DNA of 64,000 nt from Bugula neritina (taxonomy: Eukaryota > Animalia > Bryozoa), in the NCBI GenBank assembly GCA_964035545.1, contig OZ037765.1, positions 1,488,001 through 1,552,000 on the forward strand. Reading direction: 5' to 3'. Of this stretch, positions 51 to 41,303 are shown one piece after another. Below the pieces are notes generated by a model. That model was not told the DNA's origin. It made no database searches and was given only the letters and a program-made list of their open reading frames with translations. The position numbers and the translations under genes are program-made. Within the stretch, counting starts at the first letter, position 1, and each line of letters starts with the position of its first letter.

Positions 51-2682
<2,632 letters not shown>

Positions 2683-10063: not shown

Positions 10064-11348
10064 GGAGCTGAGTTGGTTGCTGACTTCTCTTCCAGAAGAA
10101 CTGAACTGAACTGCTTTCGAGCTGCTTTTATAGGTGGCCGATTACATAATAATACTCTTAGTGCAGGTTGTACAGAACAAAGACATTCTCCAAGGTTCAT
10201 GTTGTGTAATTATACTTTATTGTTAGCATTGAAAATGAACCAACGAATTAAATATTGGACACACTTGTTTAGGTGTATCCAGTCATCAACAATAGATTGA
10301 GCATCAGCAGTAAAATTTCCTTGAACAATTAATAGAGAATGAAACTGTTTCCAAAAGTAGTATTTAAAGTGAAGCCAGTACATTTTACTCCCAAAAGACT
10401 ATAATTATGATGTAATCTCCTGCCACAAGTGGTGTACTGGTGTTAGATAATTATATACTTATTACAGCTTATTTCACATTATGATCTCCTTCACCATCTG
10501 GTCACCTTACTCCGAATATCAAATCTAAAATTTATAATTTATTACTTCTATAAAATCATAGCATACATTCTGGCTATACTGAACATGGACAAAAATCATT
10601 ACATACTGCCAACAAAGTGTTAGATTTTACATGAATTTAGAAAATATTTTTACAAATTTTGATAGAAATATAGCACCTATAACAATGCAATACGTATGAT
10701 TTGATTTATAATTTAGTACGCATAAGAATATAGTGCACAATGTGATTTAAAATACAAGAGATTTTATTTGCTATGACTATGTAAAATATATCAACTAAAT
10801 TTTTTCTTTTAACTTTCATTAAAAATCTACAGCACTGGAAAGCCATAATGCAATTAATATTTCTCCAGCAGCAAGCATAAACATGCAACGTAGGTACTTA
10901 GCATGGTAAAACAAATATTTATATCTTATTGCATAACTGTTTTGTATAACTGCTTGAAATAAACCACTGTAATAAAATTTGATAGTTTGCATTCTTTAGT
11001 CATCTTTAACTAATTTGATTTCTAAACAAGGATATTAAATTATCTAAATTATTTAGAGCCAAACTTCATACATATAATATTTACATCTTTTGAGCTTCTC
11101 CATTGCTTCACTGCTGCTTCATTTGCTTATGTAAATATTATATAATAGTATTCAGAGTCCATGAAAACAGCATAGAAGTGATAATTGAGACCAGTAGCTG
11201 ATAAGTTTTATATTAAAGCTTTTACTTGAACCACAGAAGCCTAATTTAGGGCTTTTGAAAGCTTTTCAATCTACCACTGATCAAGTCATAACTAAATACC
11301 GACATCTACAAGGCTTTGTCATTCTATTTGATTATGGTTTCGAATTGT

Positions 11349-11427
11349 GGCTGGTCAATACGAAAAGATAACTCACGAAAATCGTCACACGAATTTCGTG
11401 TGATTCTCACGATCGTGTGGCCAGGCC
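11349..11427. repeat. Short palindromic element, possible MITE relic
   Basis: Perfect hairpin tcacacgaa-t-ttcgtgtga (11385-11403) inside imperfect inverted ends ggctggtcaatacga / tcgtgtggccaggcc. Confidence 0.4.
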
Positions 11428-11825
11428 AGTAACAGCAAAAGGCAATCCGGTAAAATTTCTCAGCCAGATTGAATTTTTGACTGAAAATCATGAAAGTATA
11501 AACCAGCTTTTAGACCTAGTATTCTATAATTTATTTGATCAAGTTAGTAGCGTCAAATGTAGCAGCATAATGCTATTGGATTTGCATATTCAGTATTGTT
11601 GATACTAGAATAGCTTGAGTGACTCATTTTGGTTTCTATATTGTAGAGTTGTCTTCTTATATTAATTGACGATTAACTGCATGCTATGGTTTGATTTGAC
11701 TCACGCCAAGCTTTTCCTTAGCTACATGCATCTGCTTGTAATCTAATTTTGAACATTGCTAAGTTGAAAAAATTTCTATTCACTCATTAGAAACTAAATT
11801 TCAATCGCCCTGCATGGTTTGAATT

Positions 11826-11904
11826 ACCCGTGCCATTATTACCTGTGCCATTATTACCTGTGCCATTATTACCTGTGTCATTATTACCTGTACCATTTTT
11901 ACCT
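11826..11904. repeat. 15-bp tandem repeat (acctgtgccattatt), ~5 copies
   Basis: Direct inspection. Confidence 0.9.
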
Positions 11905-12813
11905 AAAATATATTTAGCTGTTTACCAGAGATTTGAGTTCTGGGAATAATACTACAGCTGTAAAACAGTCTAGTAGAATAACTGCTTCTGGGATCTCATT
12001 TTATTACTTGGGGTTCGAATAAACAAGTCAAGATATGTTAGAATAGTAAGCTGGTACTATATTACTGGTTTTGAATATTTCCTGCTCCAATTTGTTTACT
12101 GATGTAGGAATGTGTATTGTAAACTATAACAATTACTGTGTTTTATTGTGTTTTATTATAATAAAATAGACATTTTTCTCAAGGAAGTCAAATGCTAAAT
12201 ATTTGTTACATTCTTACACTTACCCACTTGTACTATTATATTTACTTCTGTAGCGTAGCTATTGGAGAAGAAACCCACAAACACCTTATAGCCATTTTAA
12301 TAACTACAAACTTGCTAACATTACATTTAAAGTCAATTACCTAATGTACAAGACTTTCAATGGTTGCCTTCTCCCTTTTCATAGAGAAATTTTATTTAAA
12401 TTAAAATGAAGCTTCATTAAATGTAAATAGTGTACACATTCAAAACATCAACATTCTCATCTACGTATTTTATACTGTTGTTAGTTTTATTTATTTTATA
12501 AATTTATTTTATTGAATAATCAAATATTTATCAAACTAATGAAAGAAAAACATGTGAACAATATCTAGAAAGCTAAAATATTAAAATATCAAGTAGATGT
12601 TATTGCAGTGGAAACGAAGCTGGTTTCAGTATATATATATAGAACAAGTACAAAAAGGTGTTTGCAAACTGCGTGAAAGTTGTTTGATAGGCTTTTTATG
12701 ATATAACTGGGCAGGTATGTGTAATATATTTGGAAGGTCCATGAGTCATAGTTGGCATATCTGTGAGCTCTATTTTCATCTCATCATGTAGTTGAATACA
12801 TAGTTTAGTTCTT

Positions 12814-15800
12814 TTAATAGAACGAAAAAGCCAACAGGACCCCTAAAATTGTAAATAAAGCAAAACATTTGAAAACAAGGATTACTGTTATGAATGGCCA
12901 ATGACCAAGTAAATCTAACTGAGTTATTTTATCAAGTTTTATGAAACCATACGATAGCTATTTACAAGCAAATAGTTTATTATAAAAACAATTAATAGCA
13001 ATTATACATTGGAAGACATTTTCTATTTTAGGATCAGTTGAGTTTAGTGATTAGAGCACCATTGCCTATTAAACGTAAAGTTGGTGATGCTAGGAAGGGC
13101 ATCCAATCATAACTGCTCTTTGTCACCATAGAAACTCTTCCTTAGTCTGCTTAAAGAAAATCCTTTCCATCACATCACTGTTATAAACCCACATGAGTTT
13201 TTGTGAAATATTCAGCTTACAAAAAAATATAGCATTCTTCTCTCAAAAGCAAATATGAGGCTGCATAGAGGTGATGGTGATAATTATATATGTATTGAAG
13301 TTTTACAGTACATACAAAAGTTGTATTATATATAATTACATAGAATATGGGTATCATAAAAGAAAAAAGTGGATTGTATTTAATGTAGTAGTTTACCGTA
13401 GTGATGTAATGTAGTAGTATACTGTAGTTGTGTAATGTAGTAGTATACTGTAGTTATGTAATGTAGTAGTATACTGTAGTGATGTAATGTAGTAGTATAC
13501 TGTAGTGATGTAATGTAGTACTATACTGTAGTTATGTAATGTAGTACTATACTGTAGTTATGTAATGTAGTAGTATACTGTAGTGATGTAATGTAGTAGT
13601 ATACTGTAGTGATGTAATGTAGTACTATACTGTAGTGATGTAATGTAGTAGTATACTGTAGTGATTTAATGTAGTAGTATACTGCAGTGATGTATAAATG
13701 TAGTAATATACTGTAGTGATGTAATGTAGTAGTATACTGTAGTGATGTAATGTAGTAGTATACTGTTGTGATGTAATGTATAGTAGTAAACATACATGTT
13801 AGAGTCAGCAGATATCCAGCACGGCTTGAAGTAACGGCAGCATTGTCACCACCTACTGGTCCACCACCACCACCACCACCACCACCACCATTGTCATCGT
13901 CGTCGTCATCAGGGCTAATGTCTTCCACAACTAAAGTAAAGAAAGTTAAGCTGATACTATTAGTCAAACAGGTAAAAGCAGCTTTTTGCTAAACTTTAAA
14001 ATTCCAATTAATTTTAACGCTCAATAGTTAAAAGAGCTATTGCGTGGTAACACATGAGATAGTTATTTCATGGGAAAGCTTATCTTGGTAAGCTATATTT
14101 GCTTTATTTGTTATTGAGCATTTAAAAAAATTTAATATAATTTAAATTAATTTTACACACATGCAGAAATAAGTGTTTTTTGTAGTAACTTTAAGCAATA
14201 CGTAACTCACCAAATTCTTTTGACAAGAATGTGAATTTCTGGGCAGAAATCATCGGTTTCTCTGTATGTTGCTTAATCGTTCCGCTGTAGGCACCTCGAG
14301 CAATGAATGCATAAAATCCTTCCCTTAAATCTTTCCACTACAATCCAGCAACTTTAAATATAAAAAAAACATGTAGCAAGTAAATAGAAAACCAATCAGG
14401 TATACTTGCATGTGTAACTCTAATATTCATAGTGTAAAAAGATTTTAAATCAACCAAAAATATGTTCCGCAAATTTCAATAAAAATTATTAATTGGTAAT
14501 AAAAGTAAAATACAGCAAATTTTAATATTTATCTGATAAATTAGGAGTTGTTTTATTTCTAAGAATCAAAGTCCTTGCCTTTTTTACAATTCGACAAGGT
14601 CAGACCAAAGTCATAATGATAGTTAACTATCTAATCCAAACTACTTTGAATTCATTAAGCCATTTTAACTACCGTCCTCACAAGAAAAAAAATAGTTTTG
14701 TAAAAGAACTTATGGGCATTTAATTTTAAGATTTTGAAGTTACTTCCCATTTCAGAATTCATATTTTGTAGAGAAGACAACTCCCAACAAATTTGGAAGC
14801 ACAACATTTCAGTCTACTATAAAAAGTTTTTAAAAAACAGATAAAACCTAATAAATCTAGCATATGAAAGACCTTAAGCTATATTGCACTGACTTCAAGA
14901 TTGGGTTAAGTTCCTATTTTTAAATTGTTTCTTTCAAAACACTTTTATCTCAACTTCCTCTTTTCAAGCAACATGTCTACCAGTAGAGCGTCATACCTGA
15001 TTGTTGTCATTTTGAATCTGTACTAAAGCTTTCTCATTGTCATATTTGAACTGACAAGTCATGATGCCATCTTGCATTGATATCCTAACTTCATCGATGT
15101 CTACAACACTTCCATTGGTTGCAGTTGGTTCACCATACGTCTCAGCGTAGAGGTTCTCCACTTTCAGCGTGTCACCGTCTTTAGCGCAGGCAATAATGGT
15201 GACATCATTCTATTGTGTAATATTTGAAATAAAAGTTTCATAGTCAGAATAAAAAAATACTCATATTTTATTACTCATAAATTGAAGTATTGGGTACAAC
15301 ATCTATATTCACACTTTTTCAAATAAAAGTTAGATTGAGTGTGTTTACTTATTTAGAATGACATTATCGTAACTTTTTGTTAGAGTTTAGAGTTTGCTAA
15401 GACAACGAGAATTTTGCTTACCATTGTCTGTCCCGGACTGATTCCTACAGCTACATAACCTTCTCCATCTTCCAGAGACCCTTGCAGCTGGATAGTTACC
15501 ACTGAAGAGCTATCATTGGACCATTTCAGGATGAAGTCATCGCATTCGCCCTCCTGTAAACGGCATGAACTTGTACTAGCTTGTATACTAATCATAAGGC
15601 AGCATTACTGTCTACACAGGAAGGCGTAGCTGTAGCTTAGAAGTTACAGCACTGGCTTGGTAAACACAAGGTCGGTGGTTTAAATCCCAGTAAACGCTAT
15701 CTGTAATGTTAGGCAGGGCATTAAGTCCCATTTGCGTATTTGCCACAATAGAAAACAAGTCCTTAGCCTGCTTAAAAACCTTTCCATCAGGGGTTCTCAC

Positions 15801-17303
15801 AGGAATGGGGACTATAAACTCACAACAAGTTTTTTATCATTTCTAACACAACTCTAAATCACCCTTAACCAATATTCTTATTGCATAGTCTATCACAGTT
15901 TCTATCATATTCTATAGATATCTGATGCCTACCTCACAGTTATGGTAACAGCTACTGGTGGTGGAACAGCCTGTGTCATCAATCTCAGAAATGTCAACAT
16001 ATTGAGTAACTTTCTCATTGGGTACTTTGACCCAGTATGTGTTGAGTTGTTGAACAAATGTGGCGCTGTAAGCATCATAAACCAAGTAGTCATAAGCTGT
16101 AATCTAGGTCAGCCTTTCAAAGTCAATGAACTTCCTTATAGGAGTCATGCGGTGCATTTAGCTATTCATTTATCAAAAACAAAAACATTTCTTATGCTCT
16201 TTGGGATTAGAATATTTTACTAGCAATAAATGAATCTCAAGAATATTAACAAATTCAAAGGTTTATTTAAAATGACTTACTAAAAGACAATGTTGCCCAC
16301 ACCACTATCAGGGGCGGTCCATGTTAATACAATCTCATCTCTTTGGGGGTCTGAGGAGCTGAAGTTTAGTGTGTGAGTCCCTCCCTACAAACAGGCAACT
16401 CTTCTATGAAACCTTGCTGAAGGTACAACAAAGTTTTGTGCTTTGATTTCTATTACATGTTAAAAAACTATCATTCTGAGACTTGGCCTCGGATAAACTT
16501 TGCTATCTGCACATTAATGGCCCCATCATTATTTCCTTGTGAGGGACATCTATATTGTCTACTTTCTCAAAAAACTTATTGAGGAAACAAAACAAATAAA
16601 AGTTTCTAGCTTTGTGATCATTTAGTAGCAAAACCACAAAATTTCATGAAAAAGCTGACTCACTCCGACACATTGAGTTTTAACATAATCTTTGTCCATT
16701 TCATTTGCAGCCATAAACGAGCCAACAGCTGTTCCTTCTTCATCATCAGCAGGGAGTGCCATGACGAGGAAGCCAGCAAATGGCTGACTTCCTTTCAAAG
16801 TAACTACAAGGAGAAATCAATTTATTATACAGTACATAATAATATGCATTTAAAAACTGCGCTTATAAACACACATCGATTCATACACATACGAAAACAT
16901 GCTATCCTATGAGACTAGTGAATCTGAAAGATTCAATTTGATCAGAAAATATAAAAGCATATACTATATACAAAAATATTAGAGCATAAAAGCTAGATAG
17001 TGCAATAGAAAAAGCATTAGGGTATATGAGCAAAGAAGCGGACATGTTCATTAAACCTGAAGTTGATAGAAATTCCTTCAGCAGACTAATAATTGACATA
17101 CCCGTTATAGATTCTCCTTCACTGTAGGTATCCCGACTAAGTTCAATGCCGTACGGAGATTCGGTAGTTTGCGCTGCAGCTCCATGGCCTGGCATCATAG
17201 AAGAGTTAGTACACGCATCACTTCCTGCTCCAGTTGGATTTGCATGAAGTTTTCTGATGGACAGCACAAGTAACAACAACACTGCGTCCTTCCAGTTCGC
17301 CAT
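12814..17303 (-). CDS. Reeler + DOMON domain protein (FRRS1/SDR2 ectodomain-like), GPI-type tail, no cytochrome b561 (~404 aa); exons 17303-17102, 16803-16664, 16384-16281, 16065-15933, 15553-15422, 15209-14997, 14337-14211, 13930-13796, 12842-12814
   Basis: Signal MANWKDAVLLLLVLSIRKLHA. Reeler motifs AC..MMPGHG..PY, FAGFLVMA..VGSF, WTAP..GNIVFYATFVQ..YW. Linker GCSTTSSCY. DOMON GYVAVGISPGQTM..IIAC..DGIMTCQF..FIARG..IKQH. Acidic/Gly spacer and tail DNAAVTSSRAGYLLTLTWVLLAFSFY*. 1215 nt in frame. Confidence 0.88.
13035..13130 (+). mobile_element. SINE relic, family B (gttggtgatg..ggaagggcatcc core)
   Basis: aaagttggtgatgctaggaagggcatccaatcataactgctctttgtca resembles 50687-50738 aaagtcgttggtgatgtctgaaaaatcatctgatcataattgcttttgtgtca. 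Confidence 0.45.
13381..13790. repeat. 26-bp minisatellite (gtagtatactgtagtgatgtaatgta), ~15 copies, at the start of the last intron of the Reeler-DOMON gene
   Basis: Direct inspection. Confidence 0.93.
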
Positions 17304-18228
17304 TTTGTAAGAAATTGAGCTGCCCTGTGACAAGACTAAGCAAACAACCTGTTTGCAAGCAGAATATCCGACGTGTGCATACAATTCATTGAGTTTGAAT
17401 AGAATGAATAGATATATAAATCAATATCATTCTTGTGCTTTGTTGTAAATCTATAGCATAGCCTTAATGTATTGCAAACTAAAACATCTGACAGCCTTGA
17501 TTAAGCATAGCTTTGCGTCCTGTGAAGCAATAAATTTGTTGAAGCTATACATTAAAAACAATGAGTAGGCCTTAGGGTTTTTGGTCTGTAGCCTAGATTT
17601 TATTGCTCGAAAATTTTGGGGTTTAGCAGGTAGATAACCAAAGATTCTTATTAAATCAGAAAAACGTTGCAACTTACATAATTCTAAAGTTGTTCTGGGG
17701 TCTTCTTTCTAAATTCTGCAAAACAACTCAAAACATTACTAGAGTTGCCTTTATTTTTATTTCAATTGAGACCTGTAAATTATATTTCATTCTGTGCAGG
17801 AAAATGATTAGATTATTAGTGTAGAAGTTTTCTAAACTGAACTCAGTAAACTAGAAGCACTCTGTAGCTGCAGCAATTTTGTGTAAGATGATAGAAATAA
17901 TTTTTATATTACTTTGAGTTTTTTTAAACCTGAAAGTTGCAGTTTCAAGCAAAAACTTTAATACAGCCTCTACTCTTTAGATAGAATCATATTGAAATCA
18001 AGCCAAGGCACATATATTCCAGAAGGGATATTAGGCCATTGTTATTAGGTGCAATCCTACACTTTGTAAACAAAACTAGCTATAACATCAAAAGAAAGTA
18101 TACATGCATGCAGTAGCAAAGCCTCTCCTAATGTAAATACAATATAATATTTAATAACAATAATACCAGGATGAGATGACCTAGATTCTAGTTGTTTAAC
18201 TTCTGACCTAGAAAGGCAGATGTGAGCT

Positions 18229-18451
18229 AGCTAGGTGAGGTGATATCAAGAGGGTGAGCTAGGTGAGGTGATACCAAGAGGGTGAGCTAGGTGAGGTGAT
18301 ACCAAGAGGGTGAGCTAGGTGAGGTGATACCAAGAGGGTGAGCTAGGTGAGGTGATACCAAGAGGGTGAGCTAGGTGAGGTGATACCAAGAGGGTGAGCT
18401 AGGTGAGGTGATACCAAGAGGGTGAGCTAGGTGAGGTGATACCAAGAGGGT
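18229..18451. repeat. 28-bp minisatellite (agctaggtgaggtgataccaagagggtg), 8 near-identical copies
   Basis: Direct inspection; one mismatch in copy 1; no spacers. Confidence 0.95.
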
Positions 18452-18924
18452 CTTGTGTCATAATTTGATTCTTAGCTACTTTAAGCTACTAACCTACATT
18501 ATAATATGTGCAGTAAAGATTTTCACAGGGATGGGAGGTTTAAACAAACAGGAGCTTGCATGTTAAGGATTTGTATTCCCTGTGGACAACTCAAAGCTGC
18601 AATCCATTGCCTCTGCAGATACACTCTGCTACTGCAGATTGCTGTTCTGTTGCTATAGCGATCTAGAGCAGGATCGGATGTTCTAGAAACATGCTTTTTA
18701 TCATTGTGAATTTTTCAAAATACTAAATTTACCATTAAAAAGGCTTTAGAGCTTCACAAACTAAAATGCAAACTTAAACGTATGCATGTGCGATATATAT
18801 GCGAATTAAACTACTCTAAGCCCATATAGGATATAGGCTTAAAGTAGTTTAATATAGAATCAAATTCAGTAATTAAAACAGCTGCACTGCAAATAAATTA
18901 GCAAAATTGTGAGTTATTCTGTGC

Positions 18925-19172
18925 TTACATTGTCACATGATTCCATTGTCACATGGTTACTTTGGCACATGGTTACTTTGGCACATGATTACACTGTCAC
19001 ATAGTTACATTGTCACATGGTTACACTGTCATATGACCACACTGTCACATGGTTACACTGTCACATGGTTACACTGTCACATGACTACACTGTCACATGG
19101 TTACAATGTCACAAGATTACGCTGTCACATGGTTACACTGTCACATGGTTACACTGTCACATGGTTACGCTG
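18925..19172. repeat. 16-bp minisatellite (acatggttacactgtc), ~15 copies
   Basis: Direct inspection. Confidence 0.93.
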
Positions 19173-19987
19173 CTTTAGTGTAGTTGGAGTGACTAAAACA
19201 GGTATTGCTTGTTTTGTATATTGAACAGATGTGCATTTCCTGTTTCTAAAAGAATTATCTGCTGCTACTGCTGCTGCTTACAGGTAGAGGACACAATGCA
19301 ACCAAGTTGGCAAGTACCAATATAATATGTGTATATTTATGTAATCATTAGATATTTTATCTTATAACCTATTCTTTTCTAACAGAACTAAGGTTGAATC
19401 AGCTATAATCAGTATACCTATAGTATAAATACTAATTAGTATAATTGATATACTCATGAAAGAGCTTTATCGTTAATATTATATGCAGTGTATCACTTTG
19501 TGGAAGATGTTTTGTTAAGACACGTTATTATTGCAAAAAACTATGCATGTACCACATTTAATGGCATGACTGTTTTGCTTGTATATAATAATAAAAATGT
19601 TATCGAGGGCAAATTTCAGCATTATAAGTGTAAATTGGCAACATTAACTTATTTCTTGCAAGTCCTTTATTTTTTTGAAAGTCATTTTTCATAAACTAGT
19701 TTTGAGCCACATGGCTATACATTTCAAAATATCCAACTTAACATATACATTGCAACTAACTATACAATTCCACATACTGTATCATATTAACATGGAGTAT
19801 GACATTGAAACTATAAATAGCCAACAAGCTAGGTTTGGCTTGCCTTTAAGCATCAGTGGTGAGGTAGTAAAGTGCTGGGTTTACTAGAGCAAAGTGACGG
19901 CTGCCTTTCACTCATCTCAACTAAATTAATTTATAATGTAGATAATTTTGAACAAAACCCTTTTTGATATCTTTTGGAAATGCAAAT

Positions 19988-22900
19988 ATGATAGTATGTA
20001 GTTTAGGTGCTGTTTCTTGGATATTTATAATTCAACATGTTTCCGGGTATAGTAGTGGAGCCCCACCAATTGTCTGTCGCAACAATACCATGGATCCTAC
20101 GTCAGGTCATGGCCCGGGACCTAGCACCAACCCCCCTTATAGGATGCTAATTGACTCTCAGACTTATTCTCCAGGACAACTGATCAACAGTGAGTGATTT
20201 ATTAATCAAGGTTTTGTTTTATAGTTAGCTTTGTTGTTGTCAATACATTGTGTACTATTTATATATTAATGTATACTAATATTATTTCTGTACTAATATA
20301 TACTAATATTATTTCTGTACTAATATATACTAATATTATTTCTATACTAATATATACTAATATTATTTCTGTACTGATATATACTAATACTATCTCTAAT
20401 ATACTAACATATACTAATATTATTTCTATATCATTCTATATTAATATAATATTATTTCCTATATACTGTTTCTTTACTCTGATATACCGTACTAATAATA
20501 ATTTTATAATTTCTACTAAAATCAGTTCTACAATACTATATATATACTAATACTATATTTTGATTCTATATTTCCTTTCCCAAAGATTCAACTATGCTAT
20601 AATGTATAATTAATTTCTTTAAAAAGCTCTAATAGGCTTCCCACCTTTATATTTTTTCTGTTTACCCAACTCTGACACTATCACTGCATCTTAATGTATG
20701 CTTCAGTCACGCTTACCTACAAACTTAATAAACCAAGAGCCAATTTCCAAGGTTTCCTAGTCATAGCCTGTAGTTCCAACGACCCTACGGCCAGGCCTGT
20801 TGGCTCTTTCACTGCATTCAACACAAATCAACAAGATCAAGTGAAACGATTATGTCGTGGAAGGGTCAGTCATTGGTTTGTCTGTATGTGTGTCTGTCTG
20901 TGTGCCTGTCTATGTGTCTAATGCACGTTGTGTCTGTCTGTGTGTCTGCCTGTCTGTTTGTCTCTCTGTCTGTTTGTTTGCATGTTTTTTGTCTGTCTGT
21001 CTCTGTGTGTGTCTGTGTGTGTCTGTGTGTCTGTCTATCTGTCTACTTGTATGTCTCTCTGTTTGTCTACCTGTTTATATGTATATCAATCTGTTGAGTC
21101 TTTCTAGTTTGTTAAATTAAAGTTACAGCGATTTGAAAAGCAGCCTAATAAACTAATATCAAAGTGTTGATAACTTCCAATGTGAAACTATGTCACACTT
21201 TTAAATTTTTAGCCTTTAGAGAATTTTACTTTTTGTTTCAGAAACGCTGCGAGTTATATTGCTTATTTTTCAATTGGCATTCTTCTCTAATTTTGAGATA
21301 AAAGAAGTTGAATGTTCTATTCATGACTAACTCGTATTGTTTAATGAAGTTTAACTTTCTGCTTGCATTACACAAGTTGTTGAGTTTATATGTATCTAAA
21401 CCAATTTAGATTGCAAAGTAATGCTAACCAATTTAAAAGTAAAATATAACTTTCGAATTTAGACTTTATTGAACCTTTTTATACAGGGCATAACACAGAC
21501 CAGTGAGTTCAAAGTAGGTCCAGCAAAGCGCTTTTTCAAATTGCAATGGACAGCACCTAGTGGTAACTTTGGTCAATTACAATTCTAGTGAGTATTTTAA
21601 AGTAGCCTAAACATTCTAGTTGCTTTATTATTAAAATTGTTAATTAGCCAAAGTTTTTAATCTTGTTTTTCTCATTCTATATTTAAAAAAGCATTTGTGT
21701 TTTATATTTTTTGTGATAATAGCATTCTCCAAGTCGAAAGAAAGCAATTTGGAAAATTTATTTTGTGTTACATTAGTTAGTTTACTCTTCAGTCAGCAGG
21801 AGATAAGTGTCGCTTAGCAGACCACAGGTGGCAACTTTTAACTTCAGATAGAGATGTGTGACAATAGATTAATTAAAGACAGAAAAAATTTTAATAGAAA
21901 ATTACAGAATGTATTATGTTGTTATTTCATGTATTATATACTATATAAGACTATGCCTCGAATCTATAACCATCAAATGAATTGACCACACGAAACACAA
22001 CCTATGCCTTCCGCGGTTTGAATTCCAACACCAAAGAGAATGTAAATTTCAGTGATCATGAAATTAATAGTTATGAGAAGAAGTAAAAAAAAATTTATTA
22101 TAAACCTTGAATATGATTTTGTAAATTCAAAATCAGTTTGGCAAGCGTACTTTTCAAGGACATTATTTAGGTGATAGAATACAGGGTGTCAGTTGCCATG
22201 ACAAAACCTGTCACTTGGTGAATTGACACAACCAGTTTGTAAAAAAGAAACTGACAATCACAGCTAAAAGAATTTGTTTTGCAGTGCCACAATTGTGAGA
22301 ACAGTGAAAAGATTTTGGAAAAAAATTCCAATGCAGCAGATTGAATACCTTGCACCAACAACTACAGTAACACCAACCACCACGGTACCTACAACTACTA
22401 CATTACCAACAACTACAGTACCACCAACTACCACGGCACCAACAATTACAGTACCAACAACTACCACAGCACCAACAAGTACAGCGCCACCAACTACCAC
22501 AGTACCAACAACTACCACTGTACCAACAACTATCACGATACCAACAACTACAGTACCACCAACTATCACGGTACCAATAACTACCACGGCACCAACAACC
22601 ACGGCACCAACAACTACCACGGTACCACCAACTATCACGGTACCAACAACTGCAGTACCAACAATTACAGTACCAACAACTACCACGGTACCAACAACTA
22701 CCACTGTGCTTACAACTACAGTACCAACAACTACAGTACCACCAACTACCACGGTACCAACAACTACCACGGTACCAACAGCTGCAGCACCAACAACTAC
22801 CACGGTACCTACAACTACCACGATACCACCAACTACCACAGTACCAACAACTACCACGGTACCAACAACTACGACGGTACCAACAACTACAGTACCTGCA

Positions 22901-25900
22901 ACTACCACGGTACCTACAACGGCACCTGCAACTACCACAGTACCAACGACTACCACAGTGCCAACAACTACAGTACCAACAACTGCAGCACCAACACCTA
23001 CTACTGTACCTACAACTACAGTACCAACAACTACCACAGCACCAACAAGTACAGCGCCACCAACTACTACGGTACCGACAACTACCACGGCACCAACAAC
23101 TGCAGCACCAACAACTACAGTACCACCAACTACAACGGTACCAACAACTACCACGGTACCAACAACTACAGTACCAACAACTACCACAGTACCAACAACT
23201 ACAATACCAACAACTACCACGGTAGCAACAACTGCAGCACCAACAACTACCACTGTGCTTACAACTACAGTATCACCGACTACCACGGTACCAACTACTA
23301 CAGTACCAACAACTACTACGGTACAAACCATTACCACAGTACCAACAACTATAGTACCAACAACTACCACGGTACCAACAACTACCACGGCACCAACGAC
23401 TGCCACAGTGCCAACAACTACAGTACCAACAACTGCAGCACCAACAACTACTACGGTACAAACCATTACCACAGTACCTACAACTATCACAATACCAACA
23501 ACTACCACGGTACCAACAACTACCACAGTACCAACAACTACCACGGTACCAACAACTACCACCGTACCAACAACTACCACGGTACCAACAACTGCAGCAC
23601 CAACAACTACCACGGTACCACCAACTACCACGGTACCAACAACTACCACGGTACCAACAACTACCACGGTACCAACAACTACCACAGTACCAACAACTAC
23701 CACGGTACCAACAACTACCACGGTACCAACAACTACCACGGTACCAACAACTGCAGCACCAACAACTACCACTGTACCTACAACTACAGTACCAACAACT
23801 ACCACGGTACCAACATCTACCGCGGTACCAACAACTACCACAGTACCAACAACTACCACGGTACCTACAACTACCACGGCACCAACAACTACAGTGCCAC
23901 CAACTACCACGGTACCAACAACTACCACGGTACCAACAACTACAACAGTACCAACAACTACCACGGTACCAACAACTACGACGGTACCACCAACTATCAC
24001 GGTACCAACAACTAAAGTACCACCAACTACCACGGTACCAACAACTACCACGGTACCAACAACTACAACAGTACCAACAACTACCACGGTACCAACAACT
24101 ACGACGGTACCACCAACTATCACGGTACCAACAACTAAAGTACCACCAACTACCACGGTACCAACAACTACAGTACCAACAACTACCACTGTACCTACAA
24201 CTACAGTACCAACAACTACCACGGTACCAACAACTACCACGGTACCAACAACTACGACGGTACCAACAACTACAGTACCTACAACTACCACGGTACCAAC
24301 AACTACAACGGTACCTGCAACTACCACAGTACCTATGACTGCTATAACATCAACAATTGCAGCACCAACAACTTCAGCACCAACAACTACAGTACCACCA
24401 ACTACCACGGTACCTACAACTACCACGGCACCAACAACTACAGTGCCACCAACTACCACGGTACCAACAACTACCACGGTACCAACAACTACAACAGTAC
24501 CAACAACTACCACGGTACCAACAACTACGACGGTACCACCAACTATCACGGTACCAACAACTAAAGTACCACCAACTACCACGGTACCAACAACTACAGT
24601 ACCAACAACTACCACTGTACCTACAACTACAGTACCAACAACTACCACGGTACCAACAACTACCACGGTACCAACAACTACGACGGTACCAACAACTACA
24701 GTACCTACAACTACCACGGTACCAACAACTACAACGGTACCTGCAACTACCACAGTACCTATGACTGCTATAACATCAACAATTGCAGCACCAACAACTT
24801 CAGCACCAACAACTACAGTACCACCAACTACCACGGTACCTACAACTACCACGGCACCAACAACTAGCGTGCCACCAACTACCACGGTACCAACAACTAC
24901 CACGGTACCAACAACTACAACAGTACCAACAACTACCACGGTACCAACAACTACGACGGTACCACCAACTATCACGGTACCAACAACTAAAGTACCACCA
25001 ACTACCACGGTACCAACAACTACCACGGTACCAACAACTACAACAGTACCAACAACTACCACGGTACCAACAACTACGACGGTACCACCAACTATCACGG
25101 TACCAACAACTAAAGTACCACCAACTACCACGGTACCAACAACTACAGTACCAACAACTACCACTGTACCTACAACTACAGTACCAACAACTACCACGGT
25201 ACCAACAACTACCACGGTACCAACAACTACGACGGTACCAACAACTACAGTACCTACAACTACCACGGTACCAACAACTACAACGGTACCTGCAACTACC
25301 ACAGTACCTATGACTGCTATAACCTCAACAATTGCAGCACCAACAACTACAGTACCAACAACTACAGTACCAACAACTACCACGGTACCTACAACTACAG
25401 TACCAACAACTACCACAGTACCAACAACTACCACGGTACCAACAACTGCAGCACCAACAACTGCAACACCAACAACTACAGTACCACCAACTACCACTGT
25501 ACCTACAACTACAGTACCAACAACTACCACAGTACCAACAACTACCACAGTACCAACAACTACCACGGTACCAACAACTATCACGTTACCAACAACTGCA
25601 GTACCACCAACTACCACGATCCCAACAACTATAACGATACCAACAACTACAGTACCACCAACTACCACGGTACCAACAACTACAGTACCAACAACTACCA
25701 CTGTAACTACAACTACAGTACCAACAACTACCACCGCACCAACAACTACAGCACTACCAACTACCACGGTACCAACAACTGCCACAGTACCAACTACTAC
25801 AACGGTACCAACAACTACCACGGAACCAACAACTACCACGGTATATACAACTGCAGCACCACCAACTACCACAGCATCAACAACTACAGCACCAACAACT

Positions 25901-28900
25901 ACCACGGTACCAACAACTGCAGCACCAAAAACTGCAGCACCAACAACTACAGTACCTACAACTACCACGGTACTTACAACTACTAAGGTACCAACAATTG
26001 CAGCACCAAGAATTGCAGCACCAACAACTACGGTACCACCGACTACCACGGTACCAACAACTGCAGTACCACCAACTACCACGGTACCAACAACTGCCAC
26101 GGTACCAACAACTACCACAGTACCCAGAACTACAGTACCAACAACTGCAGCACCAACAACTACCACAGTACCAACAACTACCACAGTACGAACAAATAGC
26201 ACGGTACCAACAACTACCACGGCACCAACAACTACCACGGTACCAACAACTACAGTACCACCAACTACCACGGTACCAACAATTACAGTACAAACAACTA
26301 CCACAGCACCAACAAGTACAGCGCCACTAATTACCACGGTACCAACAACTACCACAGTATCAACAACTACCACGGTACCAACAACTACAGTACCACCAAC
26401 TACCACGGTACCAACAATTACAGTACCAACAACTACCATAGCACCAATAAGTACAGCGCCACCAACTACCACGGTACCAACAGCTACCATGGTACCAACA
26501 ACTGCAGCGCCAACAACCACAACAACAGTCACTACTACTGCAACGCCCACCACTACTACGACATCCACTACTGGTACAAAACCCACTACTGCTACGACAC
26601 CCACTACTACTACGACACCCACAACCACAACAACAGCTACCACTAAGACAACACCCACCACTACTACAACACCCACTACTACTACGACACCAACGACCAC
26701 CAGAACACCCACCACTACTACGACAACCAAGACCACCACAACACCCGCCACTACTACAACACCCACTACTACTACGACACCAACGACCACCAGAACACCC
26801 GCCACTACTACAACACCCACTACTACCACAACACCCACCACTACTACAACACCCACTACTACTACAAGACCCGCTACTACCACAATACCCACTACTACTA
26901 CGACACCCACGACCACAACATCAGCCACCACTACTACAACACCCACCACTACTACAACACCAACTACTACCACAACACCCACCACTACTACAACACCCAC
27001 TACTACTACAACACCTACCACCACCACAACAGCCACTACTACTAAGACATCCATGACCACAACATCAGCCACCACAACTACAACACCCACCACTACTACA
27101 ACACCCTTGACCACCACAACACCCGCCACTACTACAAGACCCACTACTACCACAATACCCACTACTACTACGACACCCACGACCACAACAACAGCCACCA
27201 CTATTACAACGCCCACTACCTCCACAACATCTACCACTACTGCAACACCCACTACTAGTTCAACACCAAAAACCACCATAACACCCACTACTACGACAAC
27301 ACCCACGACCACAACAACAGCCACCACTACTACAACACACACCACTACTACAACACCTACAACTACTACTGTACCAACGACTACAACAGTTCATACAACG
27401 GCCACAGTACCCACAACTACCACAGTACCAATAGTTGCTACATTACCTAAAACTGGTACGATACCTGCAACTACCACTGTACCAACGACGAGTACAGATT
27501 CTCCAACTCAAACTGTGGCTACAACTACAACACTCACTACTACCACGTCACCTACCACTACTACAACACCCACTACTACTACGACAAACAACACTACCAC
27601 AACTATCACAACACCCACAACCACAACAATACCCACAACTACTACAACACCCACTACTGCAACAACACCCACCACTACTACAACACCCATTACTACTACG
27701 ACACCCATTACTACTACAACACCCGCCACTACAACAAGGCCCGTCACTACTAAAGCACCCCCAACTACTACAACTCCTTTGAGCAACACAACACCTATCA
27801 CTACTACAACACCCACTACTGCTACAACACCCACTACTAGTACAAAACCCACTACGACGACAACACCCACCACTACCACAGCACCAACAACTAATACAAC
27901 ACCAAAAGCCACCACAACACTCACTACTACAACAACACCCACGACCACAACAACATCCACCACTACTACAACACCAACCACTACTACAACACCCACTACT
28001 ACCACAATACCCACAACTACTACAACATCCACAAAGTCTACAACACCCACGACCACAACAATGCCCACCACGACTACACCACTCACCACTACCACCACAA
28101 AACCTATCACTACTACGACACTCACTACTACTACGACACCCACCACTACTGCAACACCCACCACTACCACAACACCTACAACTAATACAACGGCCACTAC
28201 CACCACAACACCTACCACTACTACAACACCCACTACTACTACAACACCCACGACCACAACAACGCCCACCACTACTACAACACTCACCACTACCACAGCA
28301 CCAACAACCACATCAACAGCCACCGCTACTACAACACCCACAACTACTACAATGCCCACTACCGCCACAACACCTACCACTACTACAACACCCACTACTA
28401 CTACGACACCCACGACCACAACAACAGCCACCACTACTACAACGCCAACTACTACGACACCCAAAACTACCACAACTACCACAACACCCACAACCACAAC
28501 AAAAGCTACTACTACAACACCCACAACTACTACAAAACCCACTACCACCACAACCCCTCTCACTACTACAACACCTACCACTACCACAACACCCACGACC
28601 ACAACAACAGCCACCACTACTACAACACCCAGTACCGCCACAACACCTACCACTACTACAACACCCACTACTACTACGACACCCACGACTACAACAACAG
28701 CCACCACTACTACAACGCCCACTACTACGACACCCAAAACTACCACAACTACCACAACACCCACAACCACAACAAAAGCTACTACTACAACACCCACAAC
28801 TACTACAAAACCCACTACCACCACAACCCCTCTCACTACTACAACACCTACCACTACCACAACACCCACGACCACAACAACGCCCACCACTACTACAACG

Positions 28901-31900
28901 CCCAGTACCGCCACAACACCTACCACTACTACAACACCCACTACTACTACAACACCTACCACTACGACAACACCCACGACCACAACAACAGCCACCACTA
29001 CTACAACACCTACAACTACTACAACACCCACTACTTCTACAACACCCACGACCACAACAACGCCCACCACTACTACAACACTCACCACTACTACAACGCC
29101 CACTACCACCACAACACCTATCACTACTACAACACCCACTACTACTACGACACCCACGATCACAACAACAGCCACCACTACTACAACACCCAGTACCGCC
29201 ACAACACCTACCACTACTACAACACCCACTACTACTACGACACCCACGACCACAACAACAGCCACCACTACTACAACGCCCACCACTACGACACCCAAAA
29301 CTACCACAACTACCACAACACCCACAACCACAACAAAAGCTACTACTACAACACCCACAACTACTACAAAACCCACTACCACCACAACCCCTCTCACTAC
29401 TACAACACCTACCACTACCACAACACCCACGACCACAACAACGCCCACCACTACTACAACGCCCAGTACCGCCACAACACCTACCACTACTACCACACCC
29501 ACTACTACTACGACACCCACGACCACAACAACAGCCACCACTACTACAACGCCCACTACTACGACATCCAAAACTACCACAACTACCACAACTACCACAA
29601 CACCCACAACCACAACAAAAGCTACTACTACAACACCCACAACTACTACAAAACCCACTACCACCACAACCCCTCTCACTACTACAACACCTACCACTAC
29701 CACAACACCCACGACCACAACAACGCCCACCACTACTACAACGCCCAGTACCGCCACAACACCTACCACTACTACCACACCCACTACTACTACGACACCC
29801 ACGACCACAACAACAGCCACCACTACTACAACGCCCACTACTACGACATCCAAAACTACCACAACTACCACAACTACCACAACACCCACAACTACTACAA
29901 CACCCAGTACCGCCACAACACTTACCACTACTACAACACCCACTACTACTACGACACCCACGACCACAACAACAGCCACCACTACTACAACGCCCACTAC
30001 TACGACACCCAAAACTACCACAACTACCCCAACACCCACAACCACAACAAAAGCTACTACTACAACACACACAACTACTACAAAACCCACTACCACCACA
30101 ACCCCTCTCACTACTACAACACCTACCACTACCACAACACCCACTACCACCACAACACCTACCACTACTACAACGCCCACCACTACTACAACACCTACCA
30201 CTACGACCACACCCACGACCACAACAACAGCCACTACTACTACAACACCCACAACTACTACAACACCCACTACTTCTACAACACCCACGATCACAACAAC
30301 GCCCACTACTACTACGACACCCACTACTACTACAACACCCACGACCACAACAACGCCCACCACTACTACAACACCTACCACTACGACAACACCCACGACC
30401 ACAACAACGCCCACCACTACTACAACACTCACCACTACTACGACACCCACTACTTCTACAACACCCACGACCACAACAACGCCCACCACTATTACAACAC
30501 TCACTACTTCTACAACACCCACGACCACAACAACGCCCACCACTACTACCACACCCACTACTTCTACAACACCCACGACCACAACAACGCCCACCACTAC
30601 TACAACACCCACTACTTCTACAACACCCACGACCACAACAACGCCCACCACTACTACAACACTCACCACTACCACAGCACCAACAACCACAACAACAGCC
30701 ACCACTACTACAACACCCACAACTACTACAACGGCCACTACCACCACAACACCTACCACTACTACAACGCCCACCACTACTACAACACCTACCACTACGA
30801 CAACACCCACGACCACAACAACAGCCACCACTACTACAACACCCACTACTTCTACAACACCCACGACCACAACAACGCCCACCACTACTACAACACTCAC
30901 CACTACCACAGCACCAACAACCACAACAACAGCCACCACTACTACAACACCCACAACTACTACAACACCCACTACTTCTACAACACCCACGACCACAACA
31001 ACGCCCACCACTACTACAACACTCACTACTTCTACAACACCCACGACCACAACAACGCCCACCACTACTACCACACCCACTATTTCTACAACACCCACGA
31101 CCACAACAACGCCCACCACTACTACAACACCCACTACTTCTACAACACCCACGACCACAACAACGCCCACCACTACTACAACACTCACCACTACCACAGC
31201 ACCAACAACCACAACAACAGCCACCACTACTACAACGCCCACTACTACGACACCCAAAACTACCACAACACTTACCACTACTACAACACCCACTACTACT
31301 ACGACACCCACGATCACAACAACGCCCACCACTACTACAACACCTACCACTACGACAACACCCACGACCACAACAACGCCCACCACTACTACAACACTCA
31401 CCACTACTACGACACCCACTACTTCTACAACACCCACGACCACAACAACGCCCACCACTATTACAACACTCACTACTTCTACAACACCCACGACCACAAC
31501 AACGCCCACCACTACTACCACACCCACTACTTCTACAACACCCACGACCACAACAACGCCCACCACTACTACAACACCCACTACTTCTACAACACCCACG
31601 ACCACAACAACGCCCACCACTACTACAACACTCACCACTACCACAGCACCAACAACCACAACAACAGCCACCACTACTACAACACCCACAACTACTACAA
31701 CGGCCACTACCACCACAACACCTACCACTACTACAACGCCCACCACTACTACAACACCTACCACTACGACAACACCCACGACCACAACAACAGCCACCAC
31801 TACTACAACACCCACTACTTCTACAACACCCACGACCACAACAACGCCCACCACTACTACAACACTCACCACTACCACAGCACCAACAACCACAACAACA

Positions 31901-33382
31901 GCCACCACTACTACAACACCCACAACTACTACAACACCCACTACTTCTACAACACCCACGACCACAACAACGCCCACCACTACTACAACACTCACTACTT
32001 CTACAACACCCACGACCACAACAACGCCCACCACTACTACCACACCCACTATTTCTACAACACCCACGACCACAACAACGCCCACCACTACTACAACACC
32101 CACTACTTCTACAACACCCACGACCACAACAACGCCCACCACTACTACAACACTCACCACTACCACAGCACCAACAACCACAACAACAGCCACCACTACT
32201 ACAACGCCCACTACTACGACACCCAAAACTACCACAACACTTACCACTACTACAACACCCACTACTACTACGACACCCACGATCACAACAACAGCCACCA
32301 CTACTACAACGCCCACTACTACGACACCCAAAACTACCACAACACTTACCACTACTACAACACCCACTACTACTACGACACCCACGACCACAACAACAGT
32401 CACCAGTACTACAACGCCCACTACTACGACACCCAAAACTACCACAACTACCACAACACCCACAACCACAACAAAAGCTACTACTACAACACCCACAACT
32501 ACTACAATGCCCACTACCGCCACAACACCTACCACTACTACAACACCCACTACAACTACGACACCCACGACCACAACAACAGCCACCACTACTACAACGC
32601 CCACAACTACTACAAAACCCACTACCACCACAACCCCTCTCACTACTACAACACCTACCACTACCACAACACCCACGACCACAACAACGCCCACCACTAC
32701 TACAACGCCCAGTACCGCCACAACACCTACCACTACTACCACACCCACTACTACTACGACACCCACGACCACAACAACAGCCACCACTACTACAACGCCC
32801 ACTACTACGACATCCAAAACTACCACAACTACCACAACACCCACAACCACAACAAAAGCTACTACTACAACACCCACAACTACTACAAAACCCACTACCA
32901 CCACAACCCCTCTCACTACTACAACACCTACCACTACCACAACACCCACTACCACCACAACACCTACCACTACTACAACGCCCACCACTACTACAACACC
33001 TACCACTACGACAACACCCACGACCACAACAACAGCCACCACTACTACAACACCCACAACTACTACAACACCCACTACTTCTACAACACCCACGACCACA
33101 ACAACGCCCACTACTACTACAACACTCACCACTACCACAGCACCAACAACTACTACAACACCAAAAACCACTACAACACCAACTATTACCACAACGCCAA
33201 CAACTACTACTGTGTTAATAACTACTCCTGCAGCAAAAACCACCACCATTACAAAACCAACCACTGACATTCCTGTAGTCTGTGCTACAGCCACATCTTT
33301 CTCACAAACTTCAAATATACTAATTGCTCTTCTTTGTGTTTTGTTTCACTTTGCAATCAATAATTATATTGCTCCACTATAA
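19988..33382 (+). CDS. Reeler-domain giant mucin with GPI-type tail (~3,852 aa); exons 19988-20189, 20707-20864, 21487-21587, 22285-33382
   Basis: Signal [20 protein letters not shown]. Reeler [59 protein letters not shown]. Then ~3,650 aa of VPTTT(T)/TPTTTT repeats in one 11,098-nt exon, ending [35 protein letters not shown]. Total 11,559 nt, divisible by 3. Confidence 0.87.
20272..20432. repeat. 27-bp intronic minisatellite (tatactaatattatttctgtactaata), ~6 copies
   Basis: Direct inspection. Confidence 0.85.
20878..21075. repeat. Degenerate (TGTC/TG)n microsatellite just after a splice donor
   Basis: Direct inspection. Confidence 0.9.
22347..33260 (+). repeat. Coding tandem array of the mucin stalk (15/18-nt units with higher-order duplications of 123, 426 and 969 bp)
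   Basis: Marker cctatgactgctataac recurs with ATG at 24335, 24761 and 25310. Markers attacaacactcac (30491/31460) and tatttctaca (31081/32050) recur 969 bp apart. Confidence 0.92.
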
Positions 33383-35019
33383 TTATTTTTCATTAGACTT
33401 TATTCACCAGTTCCATGAATATTGTTAATATTCCTGTCTCTTTCTTCTAGTAATATCTTCCAGTTTTCAGCAACTTTTTTATGATAAATATATATATTTA
33501 ATTAGTTTTATTTTCTAAATCTTTCAAATTGTTTTTCTTATGTTTTTTAACTCATTGTGTTTTTAGTAATTTTAACGGTCCTAGTCTTCACTAATTGCCA
33601 TTGGAACAACTCACACTCCTGTTCATTTGATATACTTATACACCTGTATTTTATGGCTATTGTGGATTATTCTATTGGTTGCATCATGTCTATTTTCTTT
33701 TACTACCAATTTTACAGCTTCATCAATAAAAAGGTGTTGGCTAAGTTATGGTGCCTTTATTCATCTAATTGCCTGTAACACTTCACAGCTGAAGATTTAC
33801 ATATTATGCTTCCTTGTTTGTGTTCTGATTTGCAACAGGTCTTTGGTCCTATTATAACTTTTTACAAACTTAGCTATTGCACATGAGTCAAACTTGTTTT
33901 GTTAAACTTTGCACCCAGTTACAGTAACTCATTGTTTATAGCCTTTCCATGTGGACAGGTTTTGTTGGCCGGAAATAACTTTAATGGTAAGTCTTTTTAG
34001 TGGACCTGAACCAGTTATTCTTCGGCTTTCATTTTTTATTCGTCCTTTTTGTACACCCTACAATTAATCTTTGCATGCAGTGACCCTCCTATGCTTTTAG
34101 TCAAATGACATCCACTGAAATATATGTTAATATTCATTGGTTCACATCACTTTTTGGGGGGTAACGGCTGTCCTCCAGCAAACCTTCATCACAGAAACTC
34201 CATTGATTTTGCTTTGAATCACAGTTCAGTTTAGACATGTATAAATACCAATATCAGCAAAGCTGGCTGTTTATACGACACTAACAAGTCATCTCACCAC
34301 TGCGAGCGCCTAACTATTAATCTCAGTTTTTGACTTTTCAGAGCTATAATATGCTGGAGTGTATACAGCACTGTCTATTATACTGCATGATGCCCTACAG
34401 TATGTATGTTATGCAAGCATACATGTGAAGTTATCTCAGAACTGTGTGAAACTATTATAGTCCCAGCAGCTGCTTTTCACCCTAATATTTGTAATAGAGA
34501 AATGTTTCTTATCACTAGCCAACAGTGTTTGATGCTCATGTTTTTGCTTGCAGTGTTCTACGTATTCCCTACTTAACCTCAGCGACTAGTTGACATGTAG
34601 CAAAGATAAAAATGCGACTTGCTGAAAATTACTCTTCACTGTCAAAATTCAGAAGGATCACTAAAAATCTTGCATATATAGAAGGATTCTGCAACAAAAG
34701 CAAATAAATAAAAACAGCTAACAATAGCTACAACACAATAATAACCAGATTTGTTAGAGTATTACAAAGATTTTCAAACTTGACATAATAGGCAGTTTTA
34801 ATCGAACTACTGTATCTGTGGCTTGATGAGAATGAGAACTCTGATTAGTTTGATTTTTAAAAAATTAGCTGCTGCTAATATTCAAAAGTTTAGAAGTTGT
34901 CCTCTAGTAGAGTTACAAAATACCTCTGACCAATAAGGTGAGGGCAAATAACACTATTCTATCTCTACAGTATGAACAGTCAGGTAACTTACTAAGTTTA
35001 TGCTAGAGGTGCTGGCATA

Positions 35020-39925
<4,906 letters not shown>

Positions 39926-41182
39926 AATGAACTCAACCCAAACTTTATGTAATAATAAATTCAAATAAATTATTTGTTAGCTCGTTTAGTGACACATTTT
40001 TAAACATAGCAAATTTTTCCATCTAGCTATATCATTTTAGTTTCCAATAGTTAAAACAAAATGCATTTGTCCAAATCAAAATTATTATATGCTATCATTG
40101 ATTGCAAAGCGACAATCATACCCTTTTGTATATTTGCTAAAAAATAGAAGTAAAGTTTTAACTATTTAAACTTTTGTTTTGATGCACCAATTTGCACTCT
40201 TCAAACAGGCCTTGGTAAATATATGTGTGTGTGGAGATTATTTTTAGTTCTTGAATCTGAACCCACTAGTTGATAGCACAACTTCTATAAAATCATTTTT
40301 AAGTGGAGATAACTTTAGTTCAAATGTACATTTTTTCAGAAGATTTAATATCAGCATATTAAATGGTTATAGTGTATGGTGCACAAGTAAATATTGAAAA
40401 CTGTAGCATTCACAGCTCTATTTATAATTAAGATATTTCATTTTTTTCATAAAAGGTTAAGGTCAGAAGTTGGGGTTAGAGTTCAAGACAAAAGGTGACT
40501 AGTTATAAAAGCAATTATAATTAATTACACAATAATGCACAGTGCATCAGTCGGTCTTTTCAGCTCATTTGGCATATTTACTGCACATTTTTATTCAATT
40601 TTCTGTTCATTTTCATGTTGATATTTATTGCATATCTACCTAAAAGGTATATATTTGAGCTTGTCAAGAACTGGTCTAGCTGTACATAAGATGATTGCCT
40701 CTCCTTTCTTATTTTATGGGCAATCAAGAAACTCAGCTATAATGGATGGTTACATAATAACATAACATATTGTAGATGATATTTCTTAGAGAAATCAAAG
40801 TAATAAACTAAAAGTTAAATTTAAGAATATTTTTAGCATCTTAAATGTGCATTAATCCATTTTCTTATTATTCTTGCAAAAAGCTACTGCTAATTCTCAT
40901 TATTAAATAAACTTATCATCTTCACTCTTAAAGCAGATTATATCTGGTTATTTTACAATTTACAGGGAAACAAGTTTTCATTTGTTTTTTTACTTCTTGC
41001 AGGGACCATTTTTAAAGCTTACTTTTCTATATAGTTTTAAAATTGTTTTAAAACCTCAATTAGTAGAAAATTCCACAGTCTCATAATGTAAAAACAATTT
41101 TCCCATAACTCATACATAGATATGTGAAACATAGAGGTAGCAGTTTACATTCTTTTGTTGCTTCAATTGATAAAACAAGGTG

Positions 41183-41248
41183 TTCTATTGGTCAGAATGT
41201 TTGACGAGGCTTTCTATTGGTCAGACAGTTTCTCATTTGCTATATAAA
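41183..41248 (+). promoter_or_regulatory. Candidate promoter of sulfatase copy 2: duplicated inverted CCAAT motif plus TATA
   Basis: ttctattggtcaga at 41183 and 41212, and tatataaa at 41241, ~60 nt before the ATG. The reverse motif tctgaccaata lies ~95 nt upstream of the copy 1 ATG. Confidence 0.45.
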
Positions 41249-41303
41249 CTCATAAAGTATGTTATATTTTTATTTGGTGTCAAGTTGCAGGTGTATAGTC
41301 AAC

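Follow-up and report, generated by a model that had tools for sequence, protein, structure and literature searches.

Noduler and Hdd11 each contain a single Reeler domain that follows immediately on the signal peptide, and an action on microbial surfaces has been proposed for both. PIXR is a Reeler protein secreted in the tick gut, and its silencing alters the gut biofilm (PMC5543126). A gene that likewise places one Reeler domain directly behind a putative signal peptide was found in the bryozoan Bugula neritina, at positions 19988-33382 of a stretch of 64,000 nucleotides (GCA_964035545.1, contig OZ037765.1, positions 1,488,001 to 1,552,000 of the forward strand). This whole stretch is called the window in the following, and the gene is called the target. 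Noduler, Hdd11 and PIXR are soluble proteins of ~150-250 residues with neither stalk nor anchor. For the target, in contrast, the analysis of the DNA supports a single gene that would encode a signal peptide, one Reeler domain, a very long Thr/Pro stalk and a tail of the glycosylphosphatidylinositol (GPI) type. It falls outside the arthropod immune class of small, soluble, single-domain Reeler proteins, from which it differs in size and anchor, and no close relative was found in the protein searches.

With respect to the stalk, the cell-surface mucins are comparable. MUC1, MUC4 and MUC16 possess a very long proline-, threonine- and serine-rich (PTS) repeat region in one large exon, undergo unequal crossing-over and are tethered to the membrane. 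The target shares with them the giant single-exon PTS array, the dynamic repeats and the apparent tethering. Animal membrane mucins differ from the target by their SEA or NIDO-AMOP-vWD modules, their transmembrane helix and their signalling tail. The target has no non-repetitive stretch before its last 60 residues and ends seven residues past its hydrophobic run. Also absent are the vWD/C8/TIL, CysD and cystine-knot modules of gel-forming mucins, as exon 4 encodes 3 Cys and no segment of ordinary composition. The long Pro/Thr/Ser-rich tandem repeats that characterize a mucin domain are present; they form two arrays whose DNA periods range from 18 to 51 nt. Trypanosome mucins are GPI-anchored; unlike the target, they are short and have no folded head domain. 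Vertebrate REELD1, which served only as a lead, combines within ~500 residues a signal peptide, a single Reeler domain, a disordered region rich in Ser, Thr and Pro, and a membrane anchor at the C-terminus. To our knowledge, no function of REELD1 is known. The papers retrieved for it merely list the gene name.

The choanoflagellate protein Sema-FN1 has an N-terminal Reeler domain at its far tip and a variable, S/T-rich, probably O-glycosylated stalk; Reeler domains form weak homophilic dimers (PMC8011033). Unlike the target, Sema-FN1 contains Sema, PSI and FNIII domains between head and stalk as well as a SEA domain, a transmembrane helix and a cytoplasmic part, and its stalk comprises 20-600 residues compared to ~3,650. 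F-spondin and reelin carry a domain of the same family at the same N-terminal position, but both are secreted matrix proteins of large size that contain spondin/TSR or reelin repeats and lack mucin stalk and anchor. According to work cited in PMC8011033 and PMC3117680, the F-spondin reelin-N domain binds heparin and dimerises weakly. FRRS1/SDR2 proteins combine Reeler, DOMON and b561 domains, whereas in the target the Reeler domain passes straight into the PTS array.

A Reeler-tipped mucin is not described in the literature on "Reeler domain" with "mucin" or "GPI-anchored", as far as titles and abstracts, on which most of these papers were judged, disclose their content. The suggestion of a first-pass annotation, made from the DNA letters alone, that this layout is undescribed is in line with that limited search, in which no describing paper came up, and with the lack of a relative in a set of 1.84 billion representative proteins. 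Domain, mucin stalk and anchor, and the logic of joining them, are already known, and the target looks like an extreme, unannotated form of cell-surface mucin.

Gene model and Reeler head

The target consists of four exons on the plus strand (19988-20189, 20707-20864, 21487-21587 and 22285-33382) with GT-AG borders and mutually fitting phases. The predicted features are:

19988-20189, plus strand: exon 1, with start codon, signal peptide and N-terminal Reeler part (GAPPIVC...MDPTSGHG...YSPGQLIN); donor GTGAGT
19988-20047, plus strand: hydrophobic signal peptide of ~20 residues; probable cut between VSG and YSSGAP
20707-20864, plus strand: exon 2, central part of the Reeler domain; entered in phase 1, left in phase 0; Pfam match
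21487-21587, plus strand: exon 3, Reeler strands preceding the last one (GITQTSEF...), from alignment to paralogue exons
22285-22357, plus strand: start of exon 4, completing a split Tyr codon, with the last Reeler strand and a linker
22353-26503, plus strand: stalk array A, (V/A)PTTTT-type units; DNA periods 18, 33 and 51 nt
26522-33210, plus strand: stalk array B, (PTTTTT)n, period 18 nt, ~371 units
33211-33382, plus strand: membrane-proximal end and GPI-type signal, from inspection against the usual GPI-signal rules
33725-33730, plus strand: AATAAA, possible polyadenylation signal, 343 nt past the stop

The three donors read GTGAGT, GTCAGT and GTGAGT, all acceptors end in AG, and the phases are 0/1/0/2. 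The exons add up to 11,559 nt, which corresponds to 3,852 codons plus the stop. The first-pass annotation had placed three exons upstream of the giant one, and their borders, acceptors and phases all check out. The open frame 22274-33382 (plus strand) was confirmed; counted from the acceptor at 22285, the giant exon measures 11,098 nt. This frame greatly exceeds what chance would give: in 200 mononucleotide shuffles, the longest open frame had a mean of 197 codons and a maximum of 404 codons. The Reeler exons and the giant exon make sense only when joined, because exon 3 left unspliced runs immediately into a TAG stop and the giant exon alone has no signal peptide. An internal start at the Met of MQQIEY was rejected, as it would yield a protein without signal peptide. 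The feature is real, and there is good reason to expect that the Reeler exons and the giant exon form one gene and that this model is sound.

The exons were scored singly against the Pfam Reeler model PF02014, whose curated cut-off is 21 bits. Exon 2 alone reached 22.7 bits (E 1.5e-4, model positions 42-79 of 131). Exon 1 contains the N-terminal segment G-A-P...C...M-x-P-x(1-3)-H-G and the start of exon 4 contains the strand A-T-[FIV]-V...[FY]-W, both in the correct order. Furthermore, in the ESM Atlas all 30 of the 30 nearest named clusters of exon 1 were Reeler (score 0.91). The nearest clusters of exon 3 were Reeler as well (score 0.87); both results were used as leads only.

The comparison with other genes of the same genome, which contains at least 11 further Reeler matches, completes the assignment. 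The paralogues that are referred to by name are:

L021, G000:C1:13641100-13643160, plus strand: four-exon Reeler head, ~55 Thr-rich residues, NSG-TRH-hydrophobic tail
L012, G000:C1:17641400-17643130, minus strand: the same four-exon Reeler head, ~10-residue linker, start of a similar tail
L020, C1:5.5 Mb: Reeler domain, 800-residue S/T/N-rich stalk, SEA-like part, transmembrane helix
L027, G000:C9:7761500-7763200, plus strand: Reeler exon (PF02014, E 6e-8); the next exon holds the last strand, ~200 PTS residues and a CBM_14-like module

The four exon pieces of the target can all be aligned to other Reeler genes of the genome, in unchanged order and with identical exon ends. The identity of the target head to these paralogues is only ~35-45%. 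Exon 1 matched paralogue exons 1 with E-values of 5e-6 to 3e-3 in a local database and of 1.5e-3 genome-wide, and exon 2 matched a paralogue with E 1.2e-3 genome-wide. Over its full length, exon 3 aligns with the corresponding short exons in four paralogues (best E 0.009), and exon 4 aligns at its start to L021 across the passage into the Thr-rich part. The probable signal-peptide cut of the target (VSG before YSSGAP) resembles that of L020 (VLS before YSSGG).

The position of the last intron is a family trait. Because the Pfam Reeler matches on paralogue exons end at model positions 115-119 of 131, the last strand of the domain always lies on the following exon in this family. The motif A-T-[FIV]-V...[FY]-W opens that exon in the paralogues, whatever the exon then encodes, be it DOMON, PTS plus a chitin-binding module, an S/T-rich stalk plus a SEA-like part, or a short linker. 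The giant exon of the target opens in the same way, after the split Tyr codon. Seven paralogues, but not the target, were used to build a profile of this strand. When the window was divided into 2,410 six-frame fragments, this profile placed the beginning of the giant exon first with E 0.0014 (runner-up 0.43), a value that is somewhat flattering, since the training segments were chosen by a pattern written after the target had been seen and the procedure is to this extent circular. On the basis of the Pfam match and these alignments, the head is classed as a Reeler domain.

Both proximal introns contain simple repeats. A 27-nt tandem repeat with 6.4 copies lies in intron 1 (20256-20430), and intron 2 opens with a long repeat of the TGTC/TGTG type (20870-21060).

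The threonine/proline stalk

The stalk comprises ~3,650 residues, with 67% Thr, 15% Pro and some Val and Ala. The complete open frame contains 2478 Thr, 564 Pro, 206 Val, 163 Ala, 3 Cys and 4 residues that are Asp or Glu. Because at most 13 residues of any 400-residue segment are other than T, P, V, A, S, I, K or L, no folded module is hidden in the stalk; a globular vWD, CysD or SEA module is not embedded in it. The first-pass annotation had claimed a stalk without such Cys-rich modules on a single exon, and the Cys count, the composition of the segments and the length of the exon agree with this description. The window is AT-rich (~30% G+C) apart from the region between 22 and 33 kb, whose plus strand is C- and A-rich.

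An offset scan of array A identified blocks of 426, 549 and 975 nt that are 98-99% identical, at 23837-25400. Array B contains a tandem duplication of 969 nt with 99.2% identity (30305-32316). Because blocks of 426-975 nt recur at 98-99% identity, the array has lengthened in the recent past through unequal exchange, and alleles probably differ in its length. Adjacent repeat units match in 73-76% of their DNA. In array B, mismatches between adjacent units affect 52% of the third codon positions, compared to 11-14% of the first and second positions. This concentration at third codon positions shows that the array is under coding constraint, as would be expected for a translated repeat and not for a satellite.

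The latter finding bears on the possibility that the model is wrong or the gene dead, such that the Reeler exons and the Thr/Pro frame are never joined, or that an unexpressed repeat is open only through its composition. Repeats of A/C-rich ACN and CCN codons hold few stops, and the opposite strand shows open frames of 1,693 and 1,928 codons. These minus-strand frames were rejected as a by-product of composition: they are interrupted and have no ends of the Reeler-strand or anchor type. A number of further observations weigh against the gene as modelled. Taken singly, exon 1, exon 3 and the beginning of exon 4 remain below Pfam significance. RNA support for the splicing was not found. Neither transcript nor protein evidence was found; the peptides of exon 2 and of the exon 4 start, and with them any annotated protein with the head or the junction, did not turn up in the searches of protein collections, which contain the B. 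neritina draft proteome at least in part. No orthologue was found in a limited comparison that covered the draft sequence flanking a downstream ELOVL gene plus protein searches. By extrapolation, the corresponding draft contig VXIV02003391.1 ends inside the PTS array, which would explain why no protein with head or junction peptide has been recorded. Against a dead gene or a wrong model speak the concentration of mismatches at third codon positions and both ends of the frame. It opens exactly with the missing last Reeler strand, behind a good acceptor and in the phase demanded by exon 3, and it closes in a non-repetitive tail of the anchor type. A dead gene or wrong model is therefore considered very improbable. 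The architecture that the first-pass annotation had proposed for one gene draws support from splice-site arithmetic and from the paralogue comparison.

C-terminal tail, head charge and proposed working

The last 60 residues are non-repetitive. According to a manual rule, the best omega candidate is the Ala encoded at 33290-33292 (A-T-S), which is followed by the polar six-residue spacer FSQTSN. The hydrophobic end consists of 21 residues (33317-33379), the stop codon follows at 33380-33382, and there is no basic cytoplasmic tail. Judged by eye, the C-terminus fits the usual pattern of a GPI signal. The small paralogues L021 and L012 end in similar tails, polar first and then hydrophobic, and have no DOMON or b561 exon nearby. 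In L021, an intron splits the tail of the GPI type between ...NSGTRHAGILLAVR and GALAVYCGLL.

Less favourable to a GPI signal is the fact that only 14 residues of the hydrophobic run are uninterrupted, followed by NNYIAPL; a short transmembrane anchor, or no anchor, is a possible alternative for the tail. If the stretch were a transmembrane helix with a cytoplasmic stub of seven residues, the architecture would otherwise be the same, and 21 residues are long enough to cross a membrane. However, no basic stop-transfer residues follow the run, two Asn interrupt it, and the A-T-S motif with its six-residue polar spacer lies upstream at the usual distance. The closely similar tail types of the small paralogues point in the same direction, and a transmembrane helix is regarded as distinctly unlikely.

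The first-pass annotation had called the head cationic, and the count bears this out. Summed exon by exon, the mature head contains 19 Lys and Arg compared to 6 Asp and Glu, a net charge of ~+13, and five of the basic residues sit in the last strand, adjoining the stalk. The head of L021 has ~6 basic and ~10 acidic residues according to a hand count on the printed exon pieces. Because this closest small paralogue is acidic, the basic charge is a trait of the target gene and not of the Reeler family.

From these parts, a mode of action can be proposed. The product would enter the secretory pathway by means of its N-terminal signal peptide, and the C-terminal signal of the GPI type would hold it on the outer face of the membrane, with the Reeler domain at the far end of the stalk. 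The stalk would be densely O-glycosylated and, as in mucins, extended and stiff. O-glycosylated mucins extend by ~0.25 nm per residue. If fully O-glycosylated, the stalk would thus reach from several hundred nm to ~0.9 micrometre, beyond ordinary surface receptors. It could form part of a brush or barrier in the glycocalyx that keeps out particles and cells. By analogy with the heparin-binding reelin-N domain of F-spondin and with the small Reeler proteins of insects and ticks, the basic tip may bind polyanions such as sulfated glycans or bacterial surface polymers. An antimicrobial, antifouling or adhesive role is conjecture drawn from the same comparisons.

Alternatively, the protein might be shed or secreted and belong to a matrix, for example that of the cuticle, brood chamber, larval adhesive or mucus. 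In that case the tail would be needed for transit only or the anchor would be lost by cleavage of the GPI, and the head would attach to matrix polymers. Membrane mucins are commonly shed, papers on mollusc shell matrix proteins are among those that mention "Reeler domain" and "mucin" together, and the genome contains an example of a matrix layout: with its Reeler domain, ~200 PTS residues and CBM_14-like module, L027 is predicted to be a peritrophin-like Reeler protein, the chitin-binding module scoring E 1.3e-3 and thus under the Pfam cut-off. In the target itself, chitin-binding and cross-linking modules are absent, the stalk exon encodes only 3 Cys, and the tail fits an anchor signal. A matrix component is therefore considered rather unlikely. 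Taken together, a single bryozoan gene for a GPI-tethered, Reeler-tipped mucin with a stalk of ~3,650 residues is the best explanation, and is held with moderate confidence.

A bolder proposal is that the cell coat in the Bugula group is a lineage-specific kit, in which a domain, a (PTTTTT)n stalk and a lipid anchor are combined and the length is tuned by unequal crossing-over. The target would then form a micrometre-long outermost layer, whose polycationic tip catches or repels bacteria and helps to decide which microbes, be they foulers or symbionts, reach the epithelium. This proposal is speculative and quite unlikely; if true, it would amount to an as yet undescribed class, a tethered anti-biofilm mucin.

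If expressed as modelled, the target provides a natural test of how a Reeler domain acts far from the membrane. In the same case, stalk lengths could be compared within one genome, in which Reeler linkers of ~10, 55, 800 and 3,650 residues occur. Because Bugula serves as a model in which fouling, larval settlement and symbiosis with bacteria are studied, a very long, basic-tipped surface filament is a reasonable candidate for the host side of these interactions. The target is thus an entry point to Reeler function and to the bryozoan mucin coat; it does not open a new kind of system. It also illustrates that long-read assemblies expose giant mucin genes that are missed by draft assemblies and annotations.

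Related genes and genomic neighbourhood

The exon structure of the Reeler domain is common to the target, L021, L012 and L020. Compared to the small paralogues L021 and L012, the stalk of the target is 65 to 350 times longer. A further paralogue, L022, combines DOMON with b561. Because the genome reuses the layout of domain, stalk and anchor, including Reeler genes with short or SEA-type stalks, the target is best regarded as the far end of a series found within this genome, and not as a singular invention. It probably originated from a small GPI-tailed Reeler protein, whose short Thr-rich linker would have been expanded by unequal crossing-over; two such small genes lie on the same chromosome.

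The (PTTTTT)n unit is a widespread building block of this genome. A 200-residue piece of the array, used as a genome query, gave 2,183 first-look candidates. Among them, an open frame of 19,701 codons (~59 kb) that is almost pure (PTTTTT)n was observed at G000:C3:13017936-13077038 on the minus strand. It is far larger than the target, begins after "...CTPSIFVASETAATSP" and closes in the hydrophobic tail "...IIVQGNLITFLFIPFGFMISYLCFYFLFHF...".

The search for relatives outside this genome covered several collections. Exon 2, compared with the 1.84 billion representative proteins, gave one weak match of 37% identity and no close relative. The matching protein has 270 residues and two Reeler domains (GCA_001632505.1); it was rejected as distant and not an orthologue. 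When it was used as a phmmer query, it recovered just exon 2 of the target and exon 2 of a neighbouring gene. A word search with residues 1-40 of exon 4 had no match among proteins of 110-350 or of 2,034-6,471 residues, and exact look-ups of two open frames of the window gave no match in collections from which records of this genome may be absent.

The neighbouring gene just mentioned is arranged head-to-head with the target:

14994-17300, minus strand: Reeler exons plus a DOMON exon, resembling the N-terminal half of FRRS1/SDR2

Its Reeler exons match PF02014 at positions 2-34 (the counterpart of exon 1 of the target) and 36-83, and its Reeler exon structure is that of the target. A cytochrome b561 exon was not found in positions 1-19900 of the window with the b561 exon of L022 as query.

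Downstream of the target lies a single-exon ELOVL gene, whose product shares 97% identity with "ELOVL6 [Bugula neritina]" and 70% with a protein of Watersipora subatra. The draft contig VXIV02003391.1 of B. neritina (GCA_010799875.2), compared over 10 kb on each side of ELOVL, is collinear with positions 45489-64000 of the window at ~87% nucleotide identity. Since collinear DNA is just ~87% identical, the genome of the window represents a different lineage, a close relative or sibling, from that of the draft. Compared to the draft contig, the window carries ~3 kb extra at 58810-61788.

Two tandem arylsulfatase-like genes were also observed downstream (35020-46500, plus strand), whose first exons are near-identical (MQSLY...). 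An intron in this region contains a long (CA)n tract (~36070-36360). Finally, a short open frame at 53011-53445 (plus strand) encodes a run rich in Thr, Ala and Asn, followed by the hydrophobic stretch IATISLILESLILVFL, and may represent an exon of a further small surface protein that resembles mucins.

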